Positions 18,893 to 63,028 of a stretch of 64,000 nucleotides of DNA are shown piece after piece. The notes beneath the pieces were generated by a model. The model saw nothing but the letters and a program-made list of their open reading frames with translations, had not been told where the DNA came from and made no database searches. Source of the DNA: Cyanophora paradoxa CCMP329 (lineage: Eukaryota > Plantae > Glaucophyta); the NCBI GenBank assembly GCA_004431415.1, contig QPMI01000095.1:340780-404779 (forward strand), read 5' to 3'. The position numbers and the translations under genes were made by a program. Numbering within the stretch: position 1 is the stretch's first letter; each line of letters opens with the position of its first letter.

Positions 18893-19169
18893 TCGCTCCC
18901 CGGGCCCGGACGCGTACATTGCGGAATACATACGATATATCATAGTATCCGATGCAGGGAGATAAGCTTAAGAATTACGATTACGATAAGCCGGGTGGGC
19001 TCGGGAGTCGACGAGGCCCGGCGCGCGGCTGCCCCCGGAGGATCCCCAGCAGCAGCCGCAGTAGGTTAGGGTAGCCTTTAATTTAGTATTCTTCTTCATC
19101 GCGTAGGCCGCCTTCCAAGGATAGGCCTCGCAGACGGGGGTAGCTGGGTTAGCGCCTCGTTTTTCGAGG

Positions 19170-19259
19170 CTGGCACTGCTCTACTATCCCCCTGAGGGCC
19201 CGGCATCCCCCGGGTACCAGCACGTAGCGTGTGGTCGTGTAGCTACCGTGTGAAGAGCA
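19170..19259 (+). repeat. Dispersed ~90-bp repeat, copy 1 (inverted copy at 62419-62508)
   Basis: ctggcactgctctactatcccc...ctaccgtgtgaagagca matches the reverse complement of 62419-62508 with about 3 substitutions. Confidence 0.9.
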
Positions 19260-22176: not shown

Positions 22177-22757
22177 CAGCCCCGCCGCCCGCCCCCGCCG
22201 CCCCGCGGCGCCTCCTCCTCTTCGTCTCCCGTTTTCGCCGCTGTACCACGACTCCAATTTTGACCGGGCACCGCGTACTCTAGTAGACCTTCATTTCTGT
22301 TGTTTTCTGTATCGTGTATTTCATGGGTAGTAGGGGTAGGGGGGCATGGGTAGGGGTAGAGGGACTTGTTTGTTTGATGACGCAAGCCCTGCAAGAGGGA
22401 CAGCAACGTTGTCTGTCCCCTTCCCGCGGAGCTCGCTCCCCGCGCGGGTCGCAATTTTCGGCTTCGGCTTTCAAATCGATGATTTCAGCTTGCTTTCTAA
22501 ATTTCTCGGTATTGTAGAAACGAGACCGGTGTGGCAGTGCCGCACGCAGCTTTTTTTATATTGCAGGACAATCCCGCTGCGCCGGCGTTGCGGTCGCAGT
22601 TGGGGCATCGATATTGGTCGCACTTAGTGCACAGAGCAACGTAATTTACGATCTCCTATTCATTCAGCGGCTATCACAGTGTGTATTGCGACGAGTGTTC
22701 AAACTAAGACATTTCTGCAGGGCCTTTCCGGGGGCCGAGCGCGGGGGGCCGACCAGG

Positions 22758-25700
22758 CTAGGCGAGAGCGGGGGCGGGGTCCTCGGGGGGAAGGTGTGGG
22801 AGAAGGAAGGCCCAGGGGACGCGCTGGTGCCAGGGGCCGCCGGCGCCGGCCCCGCCCTGGGCCCCGAGGCGGACGCCCTCGGGGAGGCCCGGGGCGGCGA
22901 GGAGGCGGGCGGCGAGGGCGCGCAGCAGGGGCGCCCCCGGCGGGGCCTGCGCCTCCGCCGCGAGCGCCGAGGCGGCGAGGAGCGCCACGGGGCTCACCAC
23001 GCCGCTCACCGGCCGCCCCAGGTACCCCTCGGAGCCGCCGCGCTGCGCCGCCCCGCCGGCGAACGCCCAGCGCGCCGCGGGGCCCGCCTGCCGGCGCGTC
23101 GGCCTCGGGGGGCGGGGCGGGGGCGGGGCGGGGCGGGGCGGACGTGGCGAGGCGGAGGGCGAGCTCGAGGGGGGCGGCGGCGCGGGCGAGGTCGGCCTCG
23201 GCGAGGAGGCCCCGCGCAGCGAGCACCACCAGCAGCCGCCCCGCCGCCACCACCGCCCCCGCGCTCCGCCCCGGCCGCGAGAAGTCCGCCCCCCCGACCA
23301 GCCCCGCCGCCACGCACCTGCCCGCCCCGCTCAGGCCGGCGCGGGCGGCGGGGGCGGGGTTGGGGCGCACTCGGCGGCGGCCTCGGCGAGGCGGGCGGCG
23401 GCGGGGCCGGCGGCAACAACGGGGAGGGCGGCGTCGAGGACGGCTCCCGCCGCCTCCGCCTCGCCGGACAGGGGCGGCCCCTCCGCGGGGACGAGGCCGT
23501 CGTCGGTGACGAGGGGGCCGCGGAGGATGCCGGCGGCGGCGCGCCAGGCGCGGTCCACGAGCTCCACCGCCGCCTCCGTCGCCGCCATCGCCCCCGCCAC
23601 CCCCGCCCCCGCCCCGCCCCCGCCGCCACCCGCCCCGCAAAGGCCACCGCGTAGCCAGCCGCTCGGTCCGCCGCCGCGGCGTCGTCGGGGGCGGGGCCGG
23701 GGGCCGGGGCGGGCGGCGCAGCGGAGGGCGAAGCGGAGGGCAACCTGGGCGAGGGCGGCGGGGACGAGGGGCCCGTCGTGCGCCCCGGGGCCCTCCTCGG
23801 GGGCACCCCGCCGCCCCCGGCCCCCCCGCCGCACGAGGCGAGCCACGCGCCGAGGTGCCGCCCGTGCACCTGCCGGCGCCCCCTCAACCGCCTCGCAGCG
23901 AGGCCACGGGGGGCGGGGGTGGAGGCCCGGGGGCACCTCCCAGAGTGCCTGCAGGAGGGCGTCGCGGGCCTCGCAGGGCCCCGGCCACAGGTGGAGCCGC
24001 CGCAGCAGCTCGAAGCGCCGGCACGCCCTGCACGCACCGCTTGTCGGGGGCGGGGCGGGGCGGGGCGGGGCGGGGCGGGGGCCGCACATGACGACGGAGC
24101 CCATGGAGAGGGCGTCGGGCCGCAGCTGCCGACCCGCTCCCTGAGCCGCCGCGCGGGGGGCGGCACGGGGGGCGCACCGAGGCGGGGAGGGTGAGGTCGA
24201 ACTCGAAGTGCTGCGGGGGCCGGTGCCCCGCGGGGCCGGCGAAGGGGTCGCGGGGCACGGCGACGCGGCCGGTGTCGAGGGGGAAGGGGCCGGGCCCGTG
24301 GAGGGCCTCGTCGCGGGCCCCCTCCCGGAAGAGCGCCTCGAGCGCCTCCTCCATCTCCCCCTGCGCGTCCTCGTGCAGCTCCGCCAGCGCCGCCGAGGGC
24401 GGCTCCGAGCAGAGGCGCTCCGCCAGCCGCGCGAGGCGCTCGGGGGGCCCGGCGACGAGGGCGGCGAGGGCGGCGGGGCGGCGGAATGCTGCGGCCTCGA
24501 GGAGGGCCGCCGCCTCGAGGGCGTCCCCCGCGGCCCCGCCCCGCCCCACGGCGCGCGCGAGGAGGGCGGCGAGGAGGGCGGGGGCGGGCGGGGCGGCGGG
24601 GGCGCGGATCGCGGAGGCCCGCGCCGCGGGCGGCGTCGCCGAGGTCGAGGGCCGTCGCCAGGCGCCCCCACGCCGCCACGTCCACCCCCACCTCCCCCGC
24701 CTCCACCCTGCCCCCCGCACCCGCCCTCAGCCCCGTCCCGCGCGCGGCGCAGGGCGGCGGGGGGCGCGCCTGCGCAGGAGCCACTCGAGGAGGGCGGCGA
24801 GGAGAGCGGGGCGGGTGGCGAGGGCGGCGCGGGGGGCCCCGGGGGGCGGCTCCTCCTCGACGGGGCGCCCCTCGTCGTCGGCGCGCTCGAGGAGCTCGCG
24901 GTACTGCCCCCGCGCCCCGCCCAGCGCGTCCCACTCGATCGCAGCCACGGCGGCGGCGCCGAGAGCGCGGGCCGGCGCCCGGGCCGTCGCCGGGCGGACG
25001 GCGAGGCCGGCGGCGAAGGCGTCCAGCAGGCGGCCGGCGGCCGGCCCCTCCCAGCCGGCCCCCGCCCCGCCCGCCTGCTCGGGCGCCTCGAGCGGGGCGG
25101 GGGCGTCCGGTGCCTCGGGGGCCCCTCGGCGGCGAGCCCCGCGACGGAGAGGAGGGCGAGGAGGAGGGCGCGGGCGGCGCCGGCGCCGGCCGCGCGGCCC
25201 CAGGCGCGGTAGGCCTCGGCGGCGGCGGCGGAGGCGGCGTCGAGGGCGGGGCCCGGGGCGGGGCGGCGGCGCGCAGGAGGCAGGCCCCCGCGGAGAGGAG
25301 CCCGTAGACGAGCTCCTCGGGGACCTGCCGCCCGTCAGCGCGCGCGGCGGCGCGGGGCGGGAGCAGGGCGCGCCGCCGGCGGGGCTCCCGCGGGGGCGAT
25401 CCAGAGGACGGTGCCTGCGGGGGCGGCGGCGGAGGCGAGGCGGACGGAGGGCCCGGGGGCCTGCGCGTCGGGCCCGAGGAGGCCCGGGGCGGTGGCCTCG
25501 GGGCTCAGGGTGAGGCGCCCCGAGCGGCGCTCGGCGAGGCTCCGCAGGCACTCCTCCGGCACGAAGACCCGCTCCTCCGCCACCCCCTCCCCTGCCCCCG
25601 TCCACTCGCCCGGGCGCCCCCCGCGGCCGGCGCGGCGCTGGCGCACCGGAGCCGTCGCAGGGGGAGAGGGCGCGGCGGGCGATGGGGACGCCGTCGAGGT

Positions 25701-28864: not shown

Positions 28865-28991
28865 CGCCGGCGTCTTGCAGGCGCGATGAGGCTGAAGCCT
28901 CGCAGCGGGGACTGGAATGAACGTCGAAGTTGGAACTTGGAAGTTGGAAGTTGGAACGTCGGAGGGAGGATACGGCATTAATCTGAAAACA

Positions 28992-31900
28992 ATGTTCGCA
29001 GCTCCGTTCGTCGTCGTTCCCGGCGCGCCCGCGCGCGCCGCTGGCCTTCCTGTGCGCCGCGCATTTGCTGGGAAGCCCTTGCGTTGCGTGCAGGCGCCGC
29101 GCCAGAAGCTGAGCGTCCCGTCTCTCCCCGGCTCTCCCACTCGGAGCGGCGCGCCCGGTCGGCGCATTCATTGTTATTATAAAACTTACTTCAATTAAAA
29201 TGCAGCGAGCTTCCACGCCAGCGCAAAGCCGGGCTTCCCCGATGAGTACCGACGCACAATTTGGCTGCTGGAAGGTTCGTTACCCGGCTGTGGTTGCCGC
29301 TGCCGGGCACGCTCTTACTCCCGAGCAGGAGTCCGGCCCGCTACGCGCCCCCAGCTCCCACGGGACGTCACCTCCGCAGACGTCATCGTCGTTGGCGCCG
29401 GGTAAATCCATACCTTGTTCTTTTGCTGCATCAAGAATGTACTCATCATCTGGATATTCAGTATTGCGGGATTGACATTGGTGCGCTGCTGCTCTCGCGA
29501 GCTCTCCCGCGGTTGCTGGCGTCGACGCGGTCGCGCAGGCGTACGAGCTGCTGAAGAAGGGCGTCAAGGACGTCCTCGTGCTGGAGGCGCGCTCCGTCAG
29601 CGGCGGCATGACCGGGCGAACTACGGCTCACCTTATGACCAGCTGGGACGGTCCGGGATCCGCGCCGGCGCCGCGCCGCCCCCTCGCGCCGGCAGAACGC
29701 GCGCCGCGCAGACCGCTACTTCGAGGCGGAGAAAGAGTTGGGGCGGGAGCGGACGCGGGTGCTGGCGGAGAGCCTCGTGGGGGCGGTGGACCGTATCGAG
29801 GCGATCGTGAAGGAGGCCGGCATCCAGTGCGACTTCAGCCGCCTCCCCGGTGCACCCGCCCCGCCCCGGCGCCCCCCGCCCGAGGCCGCCCGCCGAGGGG
29901 GGGCAGGGCACCTGTTCCTGGGCGAGGGGCAGGGCGAGGAGATCCTGCGGCGCGAGCTGGACGCCGCCACCCGGTGCGCGCCCCGCGGCCCCACGCCCCG
30001 CCCCGGGCGCCGAGGCGGGGCCGCGCAGGGCGGGAATCAAGGGGCTACAGCTGGAGCGGTACACCGACACGACGGCGGTGCGGGGCTTCGGGCGCGTGCT
30101 CACCTTCCCCGGCCAGGGCCAGTTCGACCCGGTGCGCCGGCCCCCCGCGGTACCCCGCCTCGCGGCGCGATGCGGGGCGGGGCGCAGGTGAAGTACACGG
30201 ACGGGCTGGCGCGGGCGGTGGAGCGGCTCGGGGGGCGCATCTTCGAGGGGACGCGCGTCGCCCACGCCCGCGGCGGCTGCGTCGCCACCGGCGACGGTCG
30301 CGAGCTCTCTGCCGGCGCCGTCGCCCTCTGCACCAACTCCCCCATCGTCCGCGAGCCCCTCCTCCACATGAAGCAGGCCCGCGCCCCGCCCCGCCTTGCC
30401 CGCCCTCGCCCCGCGTGACGCGGGCGCCGCAGTCGCCCTACCGCACGTACGCCGTCGCGGGCCGCGTGCCCCGCGGCTCCGTTCCCCCCGCTGTGCGCCC
30501 GCCCCTCCTGCCCGGCCCTCTCCGGCGCGCCTCTGAGGCGGCGGCAGCTCTTCTGGAGCACAGAGGACCCCTATACCTACGGTCTGCCCCCCTGCTCGCC
30601 CGCTCCCCCGCCCCGCCCCCGGCGCACGAGGCGACTGGCCGCAGTGCGGCTGCAGCCGACGCCGGCCTTTGACTACATCATCACCGGCGGGGGCGACCAC
30701 CGGTGCGCCGAACCCCTCCGTCCCCACCCGTCCGCCCTCCCCCCACCGCGCCCCGCGCAGCTCGGGCCACACGCCGGAGGTGCCGGGGCGCTTTCGCGGG
30801 GCGGGGCGGGGCGGGGCGGGCGGGGCGGGGCCGAGGTGCAGGGCGCGCGCAGGACCCCGGTTCGGTCTTCGAAGACCTGGTGCCCGCCTTCTCCCCTTGG
30901 GCTCTCGGGGGAGCTGGGGGACACGGGGCGGCAGGTGCGGTGGACGAAGGCGCACTTCCCCCTCGCCGACCGCTTCGACTGGCGCTGGTCCGGCCAGGCT
31001 CGCGCCTCCTCCGGGCCCCGCCGCCTCTGCCGGGCCGCTAGTGCTAGTCTGTCTTGAACAGTGCTAGTAGAGGCCGACGGACACGCGGCCGAGGCTCGCG
31101 AGGCTCCGCTGTGCGAGCGTCACCGCCCATTGGTGGGGGAAGAGGAACCGGGGGGTACCTCGGAGCACTCGAAAGGGGATCAAATCGGCGTAGCGTGGCG
31201 GGCGCGCCCCGGAGGTCGGCGGCGCTAGCGCGACTCGAGGAAGTAGGGAAGGAGCGATGTCGGGCCTGCCGTTCGTCTACGTACCGTACGCGGGACCCCC
31301 AGGTGGGGACGCCATGCCGGGGCCGCGCCGAGCGCCCCGCCTGCGCTGCCGCCGGCTGAGGTTGTCGCGTGCGTGCGTGCAGGGGCCCCTCCGCCTGTGC
31401 CCGGAAGCATCGTGCGCTGCAGAGCCCCGATGTCTATCGATGTCTATCTCTCCCCCTTGCGCGCGCGGCTTCGCCGCTTCGTGTCCCTTCATTTACGAGC
31501 TCGGGATCCGCGTGCGCTCGATTCGGGCGCAGGGCTTGGGGTCCGGGCGGCCCCCGCTGCCTCCGCCGCCTATCATCTAGACGCATCCTCGCCGCCCTCA
31601 TCGCAGGCCCCCGCCCGCCCGCCCCGCCCCGGCCTGCGGCGGGCGGCGAGCGGGCTGCAGGGGAGGAGCACCCTTGGGCGGCCCTCTACGACCCCAAGCA
31701 CCTCAAGATCGGTGCGTTCGTCGGCCCCGCCGGCGGCTCCTTGTGCGGGAGCGAGCGGGGGGGCGGTGCGTGCAGACACGAGCTCGCTGCCGGACCTGGT
31801 GGAGCACACGGCGGCGACGGCGGGCGGTTACGCGGGGGCCGTCCTGCCCCGCCCGCCATTCTCCGCCCGCTCCCTCGACCCGGGCTCCGGCGCCCTCGTC

Positions 31901-32371
31901 CACGACCCGCTCCCCGTGCCCGCCCCGCCCCCCGCCCCCGGCGGCCCCTCACCCGGCGGCAGACGGCGGCCTTCAAGGACGAGGCCGGCGCCACACACGT
32001 CCACTCGGGTGCCGGCCCCGCCCCCCCCCCGCCCGCCCCCGCCCCCGCCGTCCCCGCCGAGCAGCCGAGCTCAGCGATCTGCCCGCACCTTGGATGTGCG
32101 GTCGAGTACAACCCCGTCGAGAAGGCCCGCCCCTGCCCCGCGCTCGCCACCGCGCCCGCCGGCCGCCGCCGTCGGTGACGCAGGGCGGGCGGGGCGGGTG
32201 CAGACGTTCGACTGCCCGTGCCACGGCTCCATCTTCGACGCGGACGGGGCCGTCCTCAACGGGCCCGCCACCTCCAGCCTCCACCCCGCCCCCTTCTCCC
32301 ACGGCGCCGACGCCCCCGCCCCGCCGCCCTCCGCCCCCAACGCCCCGCCCCCCAAGAAGGAGACCCTCTGA
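28992..32371 (+). CDS. FAD-dependent oxidoreductase (DAO-like) with a C-terminal Rieske 2Fe-2S domain (YhfW-like) and a putative plastid transit peptide; the middle part looks degenerate
   Basis: MFAAPFVVVPG presequence; DVIVVGAGIAGLTLAYEL, GGMTGRTTAHL, QGQFDPVKY, GGGDH, WRWSGQ, HPWAALYDP, CPHLGC, FDCPCHGSIFD..G.VLNGPA. Confidence 0.88.
29402..29461 (+). other. 60-nt GT-AG intron made of antisense plastid-type ferredoxin (petF) DNA
   Basis: Removing it restores GAG|IAG; read-through gives an immediate TAA. The reverse strand reads EYPDDEYILDAAKEQGMDLP in AT-rich codons. Confidence 0.9.
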
Positions 32372-32457: not shown

Positions 32458-33668
32458 TCATGAGCAAACGTAGCCTGCGCATGCAGCTGCTAGAGATGCC
32501 TCCCCAAGCTTGCGCACTCCGAATTGCTCAGCAGCTGGCGACGTCGACCGCGAGGGCAGGCTCGAGCTCGGCTCGAGCTCACTCCTCGAGCCACTGCGCA
32601 CGCGTACGCACCAACCGTGAGGCCTTGGCGATCGAAAGCGGGTACATGCACAGGGCCCGGGGGAAGGACGGACGGAGCTCTCGGTGGCGAGCGCGTATAC
32701 CGACGTTAGCTGAAAACGTTGAGCCGGACCGACCCGGCACAGAATGTGCCCTGCCTCCAGATCATACCGCAGCCGTTTTATCAGCTGCGGGGCGGGGCGA
32801 TCCAGAAACGTAAGTACTAGTTCATTCATAATCCGATGATCAAATTAAATGAACAGGCTCTGGGACATGTACAGGCTTTAGATCTGGGACCGGCTAGCGC
32901 GCGATTCACGGAACCTGCGTGAAGGCAGCGTGCCGGGGGCGCGTAGAGTGCAGCTCCCGCAGGTGAGGCCGCGTGATGAACGAGTAGAGCACGAAGCAAA
33001 TCTATTTTGTGTGTGAAAACTCGATCGATGGGCGGGCGCGGGAACTCCGATCGCGAGAGGGGCCGGCGCACGCGAGCCAAGCTGTTCTCCTCGTCGGGGT
33101 CGAGCATGCGACTCCCGCGGCGGTCGATGCCGTGCAGCAGGCCCTCCACCGTCTCCAGTCCGTGCAAAATCGCCGTGACTGCGCACGGCTTCAGCGCGCG
33201 TGCAGGGAGGCCATATATATGCATGCATGGCCACGTGCCATTCAAGAGATGGGTCTCGTCAAGGACGTGACGCTCGAGGAAATCGGCAGCCGCGACCAGC
33301 GTTGGAAGTTGCGGCATATAGAGATGCCGGAAAGAGCGTGAGTCCGGGTGGTGGACAGCGCTGCAGGCGACGCCGGCGTCGCCGATATGCATTTTTTGCG
33401 GGGTCAAGGTCTGCGCCGCGGCGCGAAAAAATCAATTCGAGCGAAATCGGGGGTCAAAGCTCTAAATCTGCGCAAAATCACTGACCGGCGCGTTTTCCGT
33501 GGGTGGGATCGGAGGCGACGCGTAGAGCGCTTCCGCGGGGACCCTACGAGCGTGCTCGTCCGCGCAGCACGTCGCGATCGGGATCCGCTGGCCATGGGGG
33601 GCCGATGGCACGTACGCATACGGCCCCGCGCGCGCGAAAGGGTCGTCCGACGGAAGAAAGCGCGCCAT
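32458..33668 (-). CDS. Hypothetical protein, lower GC, multi-exon
   Basis: Plausible exons MARFLPSDDPF..., ...HLYMPQLPTLVAAADFLERHVLDETHLL..., ...QLIKRLRYDLEAGHILCR. No family recognised; boundaries uncertain. Confidence 0.4.
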
Positions 33669-34119: not shown

Positions 34120-34323
34120 GAGGACGGTGCCTGCGGGGGCGGCGGCGGAGGCGAGGCGGACGGAGGGCCCGGGGGCCTGCGCGTCGGGCCCGAGGAGGCC
34201 CGGGGCGGTGGCCTCGGGGCTCAGGGTGAGGCGCCCCGAGCGGCGCTCGGCGAGGCTCCGCAGGCACTCCTCCGGCACGAAGACCCGCTCCTCCGCCACC
34301 CCCTCCCCTGCCCCCGGCCACTC
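34120..34323 (-). repeat. Near-identical 204-bp copy of 25404-25607 (intron 3' end plus partial exon of the large hypothetical gene)
   Basis: Identical from gaggacggtgcctgcggggg to cccctgcccccg, then one mismatch followed by ccactc; same orientation. Confidence 0.95.
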
Positions 34324-59129: not shown

Positions 59130-60248
59130 CGCCACCCCGCGCCCCCGAGCCTTCTGCTCCCTGCTAGCACCCTTCTCTCATCCCGAATGCACCGACACCT
59201 CTGCGAATGCCGATTGCATCTGTGCCGGACGGCGGACAGTCTAGCTTCCACTTCGTTCGCCCCCACTTGCAACAGCAAGAGGGTACTTGTACCCGAGTTC
59301 GGGCCTCCGAGGCTCATCTTATTCCGAAAGTTCCGCCCAGCTGCAGCTCATCGGCTAGCGCTAGCTTCCTGAGAGTTTCTATTGCTTGCTCTCTCTCGCT
59401 CACACACACACACACACAACTTCCTCTGCATCCGCCGGGATCCGCGCGTACGACTGAATTCGAACTGATCATGATCATGAACTTCGGAAGCGACGCGACG
59501 CGAGCTCCACTTCGTTCGCCCTTGCCATCGGCAAGAGGGCACTTGTCGCGAACGCAGAGAAGCCGCGAAGCGGCGAACGAAGTGAGCTCTACCGTTGGCG
59601 TTCTTCAGGAGGGGTCGATTTTTTTCGCTAACAAAAACGGGTACAAGATTCACAAAAACTCAATCGAAAGATACGTCAGCGCAGACTCGCCGTCACGGTA
59701 GTGTTTTGTGACGCCGTCACGCCCAGGTAATCATTACAAATGCATAAGATTAAGAATGGGCTAGGGCATAGTTTGCAGCGCAACGCGTTGCATGCGCCAA
59801 AGCTTGCGCAAGCGCCGGAGTCGAGGGAACGTAGAGTTGGTGTATCCCCAGGTCGACCTGTCTAAGTACCCTGGTCGCAGTGCTTCGCCGTCGGTGGTCG
59901 TTGCTGTGTAAAGGCCGGGCTGCTGTTTCGGAGGTCGTCTCTGTGATCAGGTACGTCCGTCTTGAGAGCTTAGCGCAGCTTGTCGCACAGGTCAAGCTGT
60001 TTAGCGTGCCGTCTTGTCGCAGGTCTCCGGTTCCGGGGAACCATGTCCAAGGAAGTCGCATCTGCTGCGAAAGGCGTGAAACGAATGGTAGGCACGCTTG
60101 CGATGTGATCGTGCCGACTACGCTCGGCTATCAGCGTTATCATCTCTTGCGGCTTCGCTCTTTCAGGAGAGCTGCCCCGCAGATCGAAACCATTAGCATC
60201 TCCTCGTTAAGCACTAAAACGCTATAGCCGCGAACGCGCGCGCGTACG

Positions 60249-60500: not shown

Positions 60501-60728
60501 TGGGCGCTATTAGAGCCAGGCGCCGACGGCCTAGAAGCTGTCTTCACGTGTTGCAATTCAGAACGTTTAAATTTAACCCCCCTTGCACATCCTGATCATG
60601 AGACGAGCAGGGGCGGGCGGGGGCGAGTCGAAGACCTAGTATATGTATGCTGCAATCACATAACTTAAGTTATAATTAGTAAAGGACTTGGTCGCCGATC
60701 CGGGCCGAGCCGAGGGGTCGCGCGCGGA

Positions 60729-61323
60729 GCGCGCGACCCCGAGGGGAGGTCAATCAACGTTAACGTTGAATTCGAAGGCATCAAGGCACTGCGGCATCTT
60801 CGAATTCAAGCTCGCTCCGCGCGCGACCCCGAGGGGAGGTCAATCAACGTTAACGTTGAATTCGAAGGCATCAAGGCACTGCGGCATCTTCGAATTCAAG
60901 CTCGCTCCGCGCGCGACCCCGAGGGGAGGTCAATCAACGTTAACGTTGAAGGCATCAAGGCATCTTCGAATTCCGAAAGTTCAAGCTCGCTCCGCGCGCG
61001 ACCCCGAGGGGAGGTCAATCAACGTTAACGTTGAATTCGAAGGCATCAAGGCACTGCGGCATCTTCGAATTCAAGCTCGCTCCGCGCGCGACCCCGAGGG
61101 GAGGTCAATCAACGTTAACGTTGAAGGCATCAAGGCATCTTCGAATTCCGAAAGTTCAAGCTCGCTCCGCGCGCGACCCCGAGGGGAGGTCAATCAACGT
61201 TAACGTTGAAGGCATCAAGGCACTGCGGCATCTTCGAATTCAAGCTCGCTCCGCGCGCGACCCCAAGGGGAGGTCAATCAACGTTAACGTTGAAGGCATC
61301 AAGGCATCTTCGAATTCAAGCTA
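60729..61323. repeat. Palindrome-rich tandem satellite, 7 units (period 84-90 bp)
   Basis: gcgcgacccc recurs at 60731, 60821, 60911, 60996, 61086, 61171 and 61255; each unit carries tcaacgttaacgttga. Confidence 0.95.
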
Positions 61324-61497
61324 GCGCTCGCGATCGCCGATCGCGAGTCGCGTATACGTACCAGCTTTCACTGCGTTCGCCCCCACTTGCCATCGGCAAG
61401 AGGGCACTTGTACCCGGGTTCCTCATCATATTCCGCAGTCTCTCCGATCGAGGCTCGCTCTATCTCTCCGAGGGTCTACCTCTCTCTGCAGCTAGCT

Positions 61498-62418: not shown

Positions 62419-62508
62419 TGCTCTTCACACGGTAGCTACACGCCCACATGCTACGTGCTGGTACCCGGGGGATGCCGAGCCCTCAGGGGGATAGTAGAGC
62501 AGTGCCAG
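62419..62508 (-). repeat. Dispersed ~90-bp repeat, copy 2
   Basis: Reverse complement of 19170-19259. Confidence 0.9.
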
Positions 62509-63028
62509 GCTCGCCAGCCCGAAAGGCTTCAGTGCCAGAATTCTTAAGCTTAGCTATAGCTCTCTGGTCGTAAGCCCGCCTGGCCGCGGGACCCCGCCGC
62601 GGCGCCTCGCGCAGCCTGCCCCTGACGCGGCCTGCCCCGCTGCTGGGCTTGCAATTGTGTTCTAGGTGGGTGATCGTAATAGGTGATCGTAATCGTGGTT
62701 CTCCGGGACGGGTCACATCCCACTTTCCGGCGAAGGGGCGGCGATGCCCCTAGCTTCGCTTCAGGCGTAGACCCCTAGCCAGCGATTCTGCACGAGATGC
62801 TTGGTGCGTAATCAAGGCGAAGAGGGCGTGGCCGGCTCGGCGTCGGCGCGGCTGAAGAGATGTATAAATGTTACAGCTATGTTGAATGAATGCGCAGCAG
62901 CGAAGGCGGGAGGTGCGGCCTCGTTGTGGCACAGATGGTTCCTTACAAGGCCCGGTGACTAGAGCCTTCGGCAACGCGCAGGCGGTACGGTGGGCCTGCG
63001 CTCTCGGCGGGAGTGTACGCCGAGCGAT

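Follow-up and report, generated by a model that had tools for sequence, protein, structure and literature searches.

Can a spliceosomal intron be built from a piece of plastid DNA? The source of most gained introns is unknown, and a short AT-rich segment in a nuclear gene of the glaucophyte Cyanophora paradoxa CCMP329 raises this question in an unusually legible form, with a donor, two junctions and subsequent drift that can be read base by base. The segment lies in a window of 64,000 nt (contig QPMI01000095.1, positions 340,780 to 404,779 of the forward strand), to which all coordinates below refer. It is a real, intron-shaped plastid insertion (NUPT) with a named donor and likely represents the gain of an intron, through a class of mechanism that is itself already known.

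The host gene and its predicted 60-nt intron

The gene that carries the segment (Table 1) encodes a protein with a transit-peptide-like leader and corresponds to the C. paradoxa model tig00000383_g24714.t1, which was found by a search with one exon (97% identical protein) and maps exactly onto the window as 19 exons, the first at 28992, separated by 18 introns, 29402-29461 being one of them. This model originates from RNA-trained ab initio gene prediction (PMC6704402); its agreement with the predicted intron is consistent with splicing but, being ab initio, falls short of proof. The published model skips two coding exons, 30853-30997 (VRWTKAHF..WRWSGQ) and 31581-31606 (ILAALIAG), inside a modelled intron of 801 nt. 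At least three introns of the gene are of the GC-AG type (30377, 31607 and 32125), the one at 30377 being supported by RNA.

Table 1. Features of the host gene and its inserts, in window coordinates
Feature	Position	Strand	Basis or remark
Host gene, DAO-family FAD-dependent oxidoreductase with C-terminal Rieske domain	28992..32371	+	homologue and domain matches
Modelled intron 1, 48 nt, the 36-nt insert being preceded by 7 and followed by 5 host nt	29158..29205	+	model mapping
Second high-copy AT-rich insert, 36 nt, probably plastid DNA	29165..29200		flanked by loose contig ends; bin depth 2154
Upstream exon, 73 nt, ending ...ADVIVVGAG	29329..29401	+	model mapping
Plastid petF (ferredoxin) fragment, 60 nt, antisense to host gene	29401..29460	-	57/60 to high-copy donor
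Predicted spliceosomal intron, phase 2, second Gly of GAGIAG	29402..29461	+	frame logic, published model
Putative branch-point-like CTCAT, A at -17 from 3' end, from plastid DNA	29442..29446	+	motif likeness
Downstream exon, 19 nt, IAGLTL, GC3 3/7	29462..29480	+	model mapping
Unrelated DNA in place of exons for conserved 39-residue block	31000..31580		limits approximate

The window is strongly GC-rich and its introns are short. In the host gene, introns usually measure 47-79 nt, and 16 of the 17 other modelled introns have a GC content of 0.67-0.93, the exception (0.31) being intron 1, which contains the second insert. The GC content of the segment 29402-29461 is 0.37. Left unspliced, the host frame reads VIVVGAG and then meets a TAA at 29403-29405, and among all nearby GT/GC-AG pairs only 29402-29461, with the donor GG|GTAAAT and the acceptor TTCAG|T, restores VVGAGIAGL, the form that is present in homologues. 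Every alternative pair shifts the frame, retains the stop or ruins the motif, and these candidates were rejected. Reading of the frame thus confirms the original prediction that 60 AT-rich nucleotides split a Gly codon of VGAGIAG, introduce a stop if unspliced and would restore the motif exactly if removed by GT..AG splicing. Its assignment of the limits also holds, with the insert providing the GT and a host G completing the AG. All but the last of the 60 intron nucleotides are donor-derived (59/60), and to within this single host base the intron is, as had been claimed, made entirely of petF DNA.

Branch-like motifs are found in several other introns of the host gene at -12 to -26, a range that includes the position of CTCAT. 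With GT..YAG ends, a branch-like motif and a removal that restores a conserved frame, the segment resembles a U2 spliceosomal intron, and we infer that 29401 is spliced to 29462. In a simulation, a random 60-nt AT-rich insert was exactly removable as GT..YAG in just 0.26% of the trials. The 19-nt exon that follows is itself unusual in its AT-ending synonymous codons, its GC3 contrasting with 0.74-1.0 elsewhere (p ~0.05).

The donor is the plastid petF gene

Read on the antisense strand, the insert gives NTEYPDDEYILDAAKEQGMDLP, a peptide that matches plant-type ferredoxins in the PDB with an E value of 7e-7. At the DNA level, the insert differs by three mismatches (95% identity) from a high-copy contig of the organism itself, a 57/60 match for which the chance at a fixed place is about 1e-26. 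The loose ends of this contig start exactly at 29401 and 29460, and its depth in one DNA run is 7,539, compared with 15-30 for the contigs crossing both junctions, which corresponds to approximately 250 times the nuclear depth. Inspected by eye, the antisense flanks of the donor read CEEQGLDTTI before and YSCRAGACST after the insert peptide; both continue as ferredoxin, which identifies the donor as an intact ferredoxin gene. We take petF to be plastid-encoded in C. paradoxa, and a ferredoxin gene at this copy number is therefore plastid petF: the donor is organellar by depth and plastid by gene identity. The original prediction of antisense petF DNA with about 90-95% identity is thus borne out. 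The C. paradoxa plastid genome (U30821) has a GC content of 30.5% (PMC6330054). With its close match to organelle DNA of the same organism and its location in single-copy nuclear DNA, the segment qualifies as a NUPT.

Two of the three differences can be placed. The breaks of the nuclear-depth contigs at 29453 and 29425 imply that insert and donor have the 31-mer 29424-29454 in common and consequently differ at 29423 and 29455, and the third mismatch lies within 29401-29422. Provided that the donor encodes the residues usual at these places, the mismatches at 29423 and 29455 would represent Glu-to-Lys and Cys-to-Tyr changes. Three RNA contigs also cover 29401-29460. They were considered as host pre-mRNA and rejected, because they carry the three donor mismatches and end at the limits of the insert, which identifies them as petF transcripts. 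In all three runs, the mean RNA depth over 29380-29499 is due to the petF contig alone, and no host contig is present there.

Gain of a new intron or replacement of an old one

The reading that we regard as the most probable, although by no means as certain, is that the intron is a new gain, which arose when plastid petF DNA was inserted by break repair and which was then spliced under selection. A 60-nt piece of plastid petF would have been ligated in antisense orientation where the FAD-binding exon of a nuclear gene, functional at that time, was broken, through end joining that used scarcely any microhomology, if any at all. By chance, the insert would start with G-GT, end with CA in front of a host G and carry the branch-like CTCAT; the spliceosome would remove exactly 60 nt and restore the Gly codon. 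The allele would have persisted because it was spliceable, and the insert would have drifted since by three substitutions.

A rather unlikely but still substantial alternative is that an older intron at this site was deleted nearly end to end and that plastid DNA patched the gap via microhomologies at the splice sites, in which case the intron position would not be new. The junctions were examined with both readings in mind. In the donor, T precedes 29401 and A follows 29460; the window has G at both places. Under insertion into the exon (GCC G|GT ATT), the overlap comprises 1 nt on the left and 0 nt on the right, which leaves no in-register microhomology of at least 2 nt between host and donor, and the ends of the insert show no target-site duplication. 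Replacement would provide microhomology at both junctions, namely GGT on the left (the exon G plus the old GT, 3 nt) and CA on the right (from the old CAG, 2 nt). The overlaps thus fail to separate gain from replacement. The original prediction had proposed microhomology-mediated joining at a ggta common to the host target and the start of the insert. The tetranucleotide is indeed present in both, but one base out of register, and joining at GGTA would leave two Gs where the window has three, so that this part of the proposal is not supported.

Replacement is also in line with the length of the insert, which fits the usual intron size of the host gene, and with a second insert in the same gene that retains the intron-like ends GTCGGCG and TGCAG. 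On the other hand, it requires a deletion of approximately 55 nt that ended 1-3 nt from both splice sites. Host introns contain 67-93% GC, and a GC-rich remnant of an older intron is found at neither end of the insert; it is this absence that makes us favour gain over replacement.

Comparison with other lineages adds little to this decision. None of six green orthologues (Myrmecia, Klebsormidium, Coccomyxa, Gonium, Parachlorella and Chara) has an intron within 3 codons of the site, which speaks against an older intron. However, of the 18 introns modelled in Cyanophora, just 4 are shared with any of these orthologues, and with the other 14 unshared, absence from the green sequences is expected either way and the comparison is weak. 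Protein searches found no glaucophyte orthologue of the host protein, which in a quick tree groups with a green-lineage clade (SH-aLRT 92) on a long branch.

For a new gain at a site that would have had no earlier intron, the low frequency of exactly removable inserts has to be weighed against the number of insertions that took place. About 250 plastid insertions have been inferred for C. paradoxa (PMC5570036, Table 2), and with so many, an occasional exactly removable one is plausible despite the 0.26%. AT-rich plastid DNA is conspicuous in a genome of 70% GC, which makes a genome-wide count in C. paradoxa easy, and such a count would separate gain from replacement.

A second insert in intron 1

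The same gene carries a second AT-rich insert, for which the bin depth implies a copy number of about 7,000x. Intron 1, in which it lies, would bring an in-frame stop if left unspliced. Excising the 36-nt insert alone leaves an open frame, PGRRAASF, that fits the leader peptide; the region has no RNA coverage. As judged from the sequence, intron 1 may consist of this insert plus 12 nt of a former transit-peptide exon, and these 12 host nucleotides look equally like the ends of an ordinary intron. We put forward only tentatively that C. paradoxa repeatedly gains introns from plastid DNA and that the host gene has two of them, one an exact gain from petF and one assembled from the 36-nt insert and 12 nt of exon. 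If this were true, a single genome would hold enough events to measure a route that has so far been documented by a handful of mitochondrial examples.

The state of the host gene

Host RNA contigs (depth 3-8) begin at 29555. From 29650 to 30433 they show the removal of five successive introns, and splicing is seen once more further 3'. Downstream, the gene is damaged. A conserved block of 39 residues in the C-terminal part of the FAD domain, running from V.EP.D to GDSGxGMTxGT, is found in 129 of 130 homologues, and its motif G[DN]SGxG[ML]T in 117 of the 130. An unspliced search of the whole window for this block returned background only, and when the gap was searched with a profile that allowed for splicing, the score was 11, which equals background, compared with 91 for a control block. 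One DNA contig spans 30839-32004 without interruption, and the loss of the block is thus not an assembly error; in the published model it is concealed within the 801-nt intron, and it had escaped the original prediction. The tetranucleotide CTAG occurs near both ends of 31000-31580. RNA reads through 30997-31068 into a stop near 31057. In another RNA contig, 31533-31602 is joined by splicing to the exons of the Rieske domain; this suggests that the gene is split and hints at a second transcription unit. Judging from these sequences, the host enzyme is probably no longer complete, and the gene may be dying.

This raises the question of whether the gene was already dead when it received the plastid fragment. 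In that case the insertion would have been neutral, the segment unspliced or its splicing irrelevant, and the GT..AG fit fortuitous. The missing block, the long branch of the host protein, two inserts within the first 500 bp of the gene and an RNA depth that is low, nil over the 5' exons and includes the read-through into a stop are all in agreement with such a scenario. Nevertheless, we consider it improbable. The remaining exons contain no stop, frameshift or lost splice site, GC3 is 0.82-1.0 from 29539 on, and RNA shows splicing of five introns in a row further downstream. Exact removability would in addition have to be a coincidence of the rarity found in the simulation. Under neutral drift of 5%, moreover, frame and splice sites survive in only about 1.5% of cases, or about 4% when the uncertainty of 3/60 is allowed for, an estimate which assumes that the three differences accumulated at the neutral rate, as opposed to being introduced during repair. 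This low survival indicates that selection probably acted on the host gene while it carried the insert. We infer that insertion and splicing under selection came first and that the 3' damage followed later.

That the segment is a chimera of the assembly, or stems from cyanobacterial or cyanophage DNA, is highly improbable: matches of cyanophage ferredoxins to part of the insert reach 83-85%, but exact 24-mers of the insert occur neither in GTDB genomes nor in JGI metagenomes, nuclear-depth contigs (28900-29453 and 29425-30789) span both junctions without mismatch, at least 99% of the sampled words of the stretch are present in each of 16 DNA runs, and the high-copy donor is present in the same sample.

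Relation to known sources of introns

A small number of mitochondrial examples are known in which organelle DNA served as raw material for introns (PMC3443670, PMC9860276). A review from 2012 counted five unambiguous intron gains by break repair, for which the evidence was similarity to mitochondrial DNA (PMC3443670). Among the gained introns of Daphnia (Li et al. 2009), as far as they are summarized in that review, one is homologous to mitochondrial 16S rRNA, and 43% are flanked by short direct repeats (PMC3443670). The petF intron resembles the Daphnia gains in its organellar raw material and in the end-joining model. In contrast to them, it is not polarized by intron-less alleles or species, and it has no flanking direct repeat beyond 1 nt. 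Likewise, it has the organelle source in common with a known spliceosomal intron that was traced to organelle DNA and ascribed to break repair, and differs from it by its plastid donor, by splicing that is predicted and by the damage to its host gene.

NUPTs within introns have also been described, e.g., in Amorphochlora amoebiformis (PMC12730881). The NUPTs of this species and of C. paradoxa are likewise short plastid fragments, with 87-97% identity and mostly intronic locations (PMC12730881, PMC5570036). Different from NUPTs that reside inside introns, the petF fragment makes up virtually the entire intron; the 5' splice site, a branch-like motif and, except for one base, the 3' splice site come from the fragment. 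AT-rich foreign DNA can thus conform to the splice signals used in a genome with introns of about 85% GC. A literature search of incomplete coverage found no published example of a whole intron of plastid origin. Introners, finally, are repeated transposable elements (PMC9860276), whereas the petF intron is an isolated fragment of a protein-coding plastid gene; the 64-kb window contains no second copy of the insert, duplications at its ends are absent, and the donor is a ferredoxin gene.

Other features of the window

The host gene is flanked by a near-identical duplication of 204 bp (99.5%; 25404-25607 and 34120-34323). The window further contains a 95-bp sequence with an inverted copy of 96% identity (19165-19259 and 62419-62513) and a tandem array with units of approximately 85-90 bp at 60729-61325. 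Other AT-rich islands with GT..AG ends are located at 22448-22517, 32810-32881, 60627-60687 and 59594-59684.
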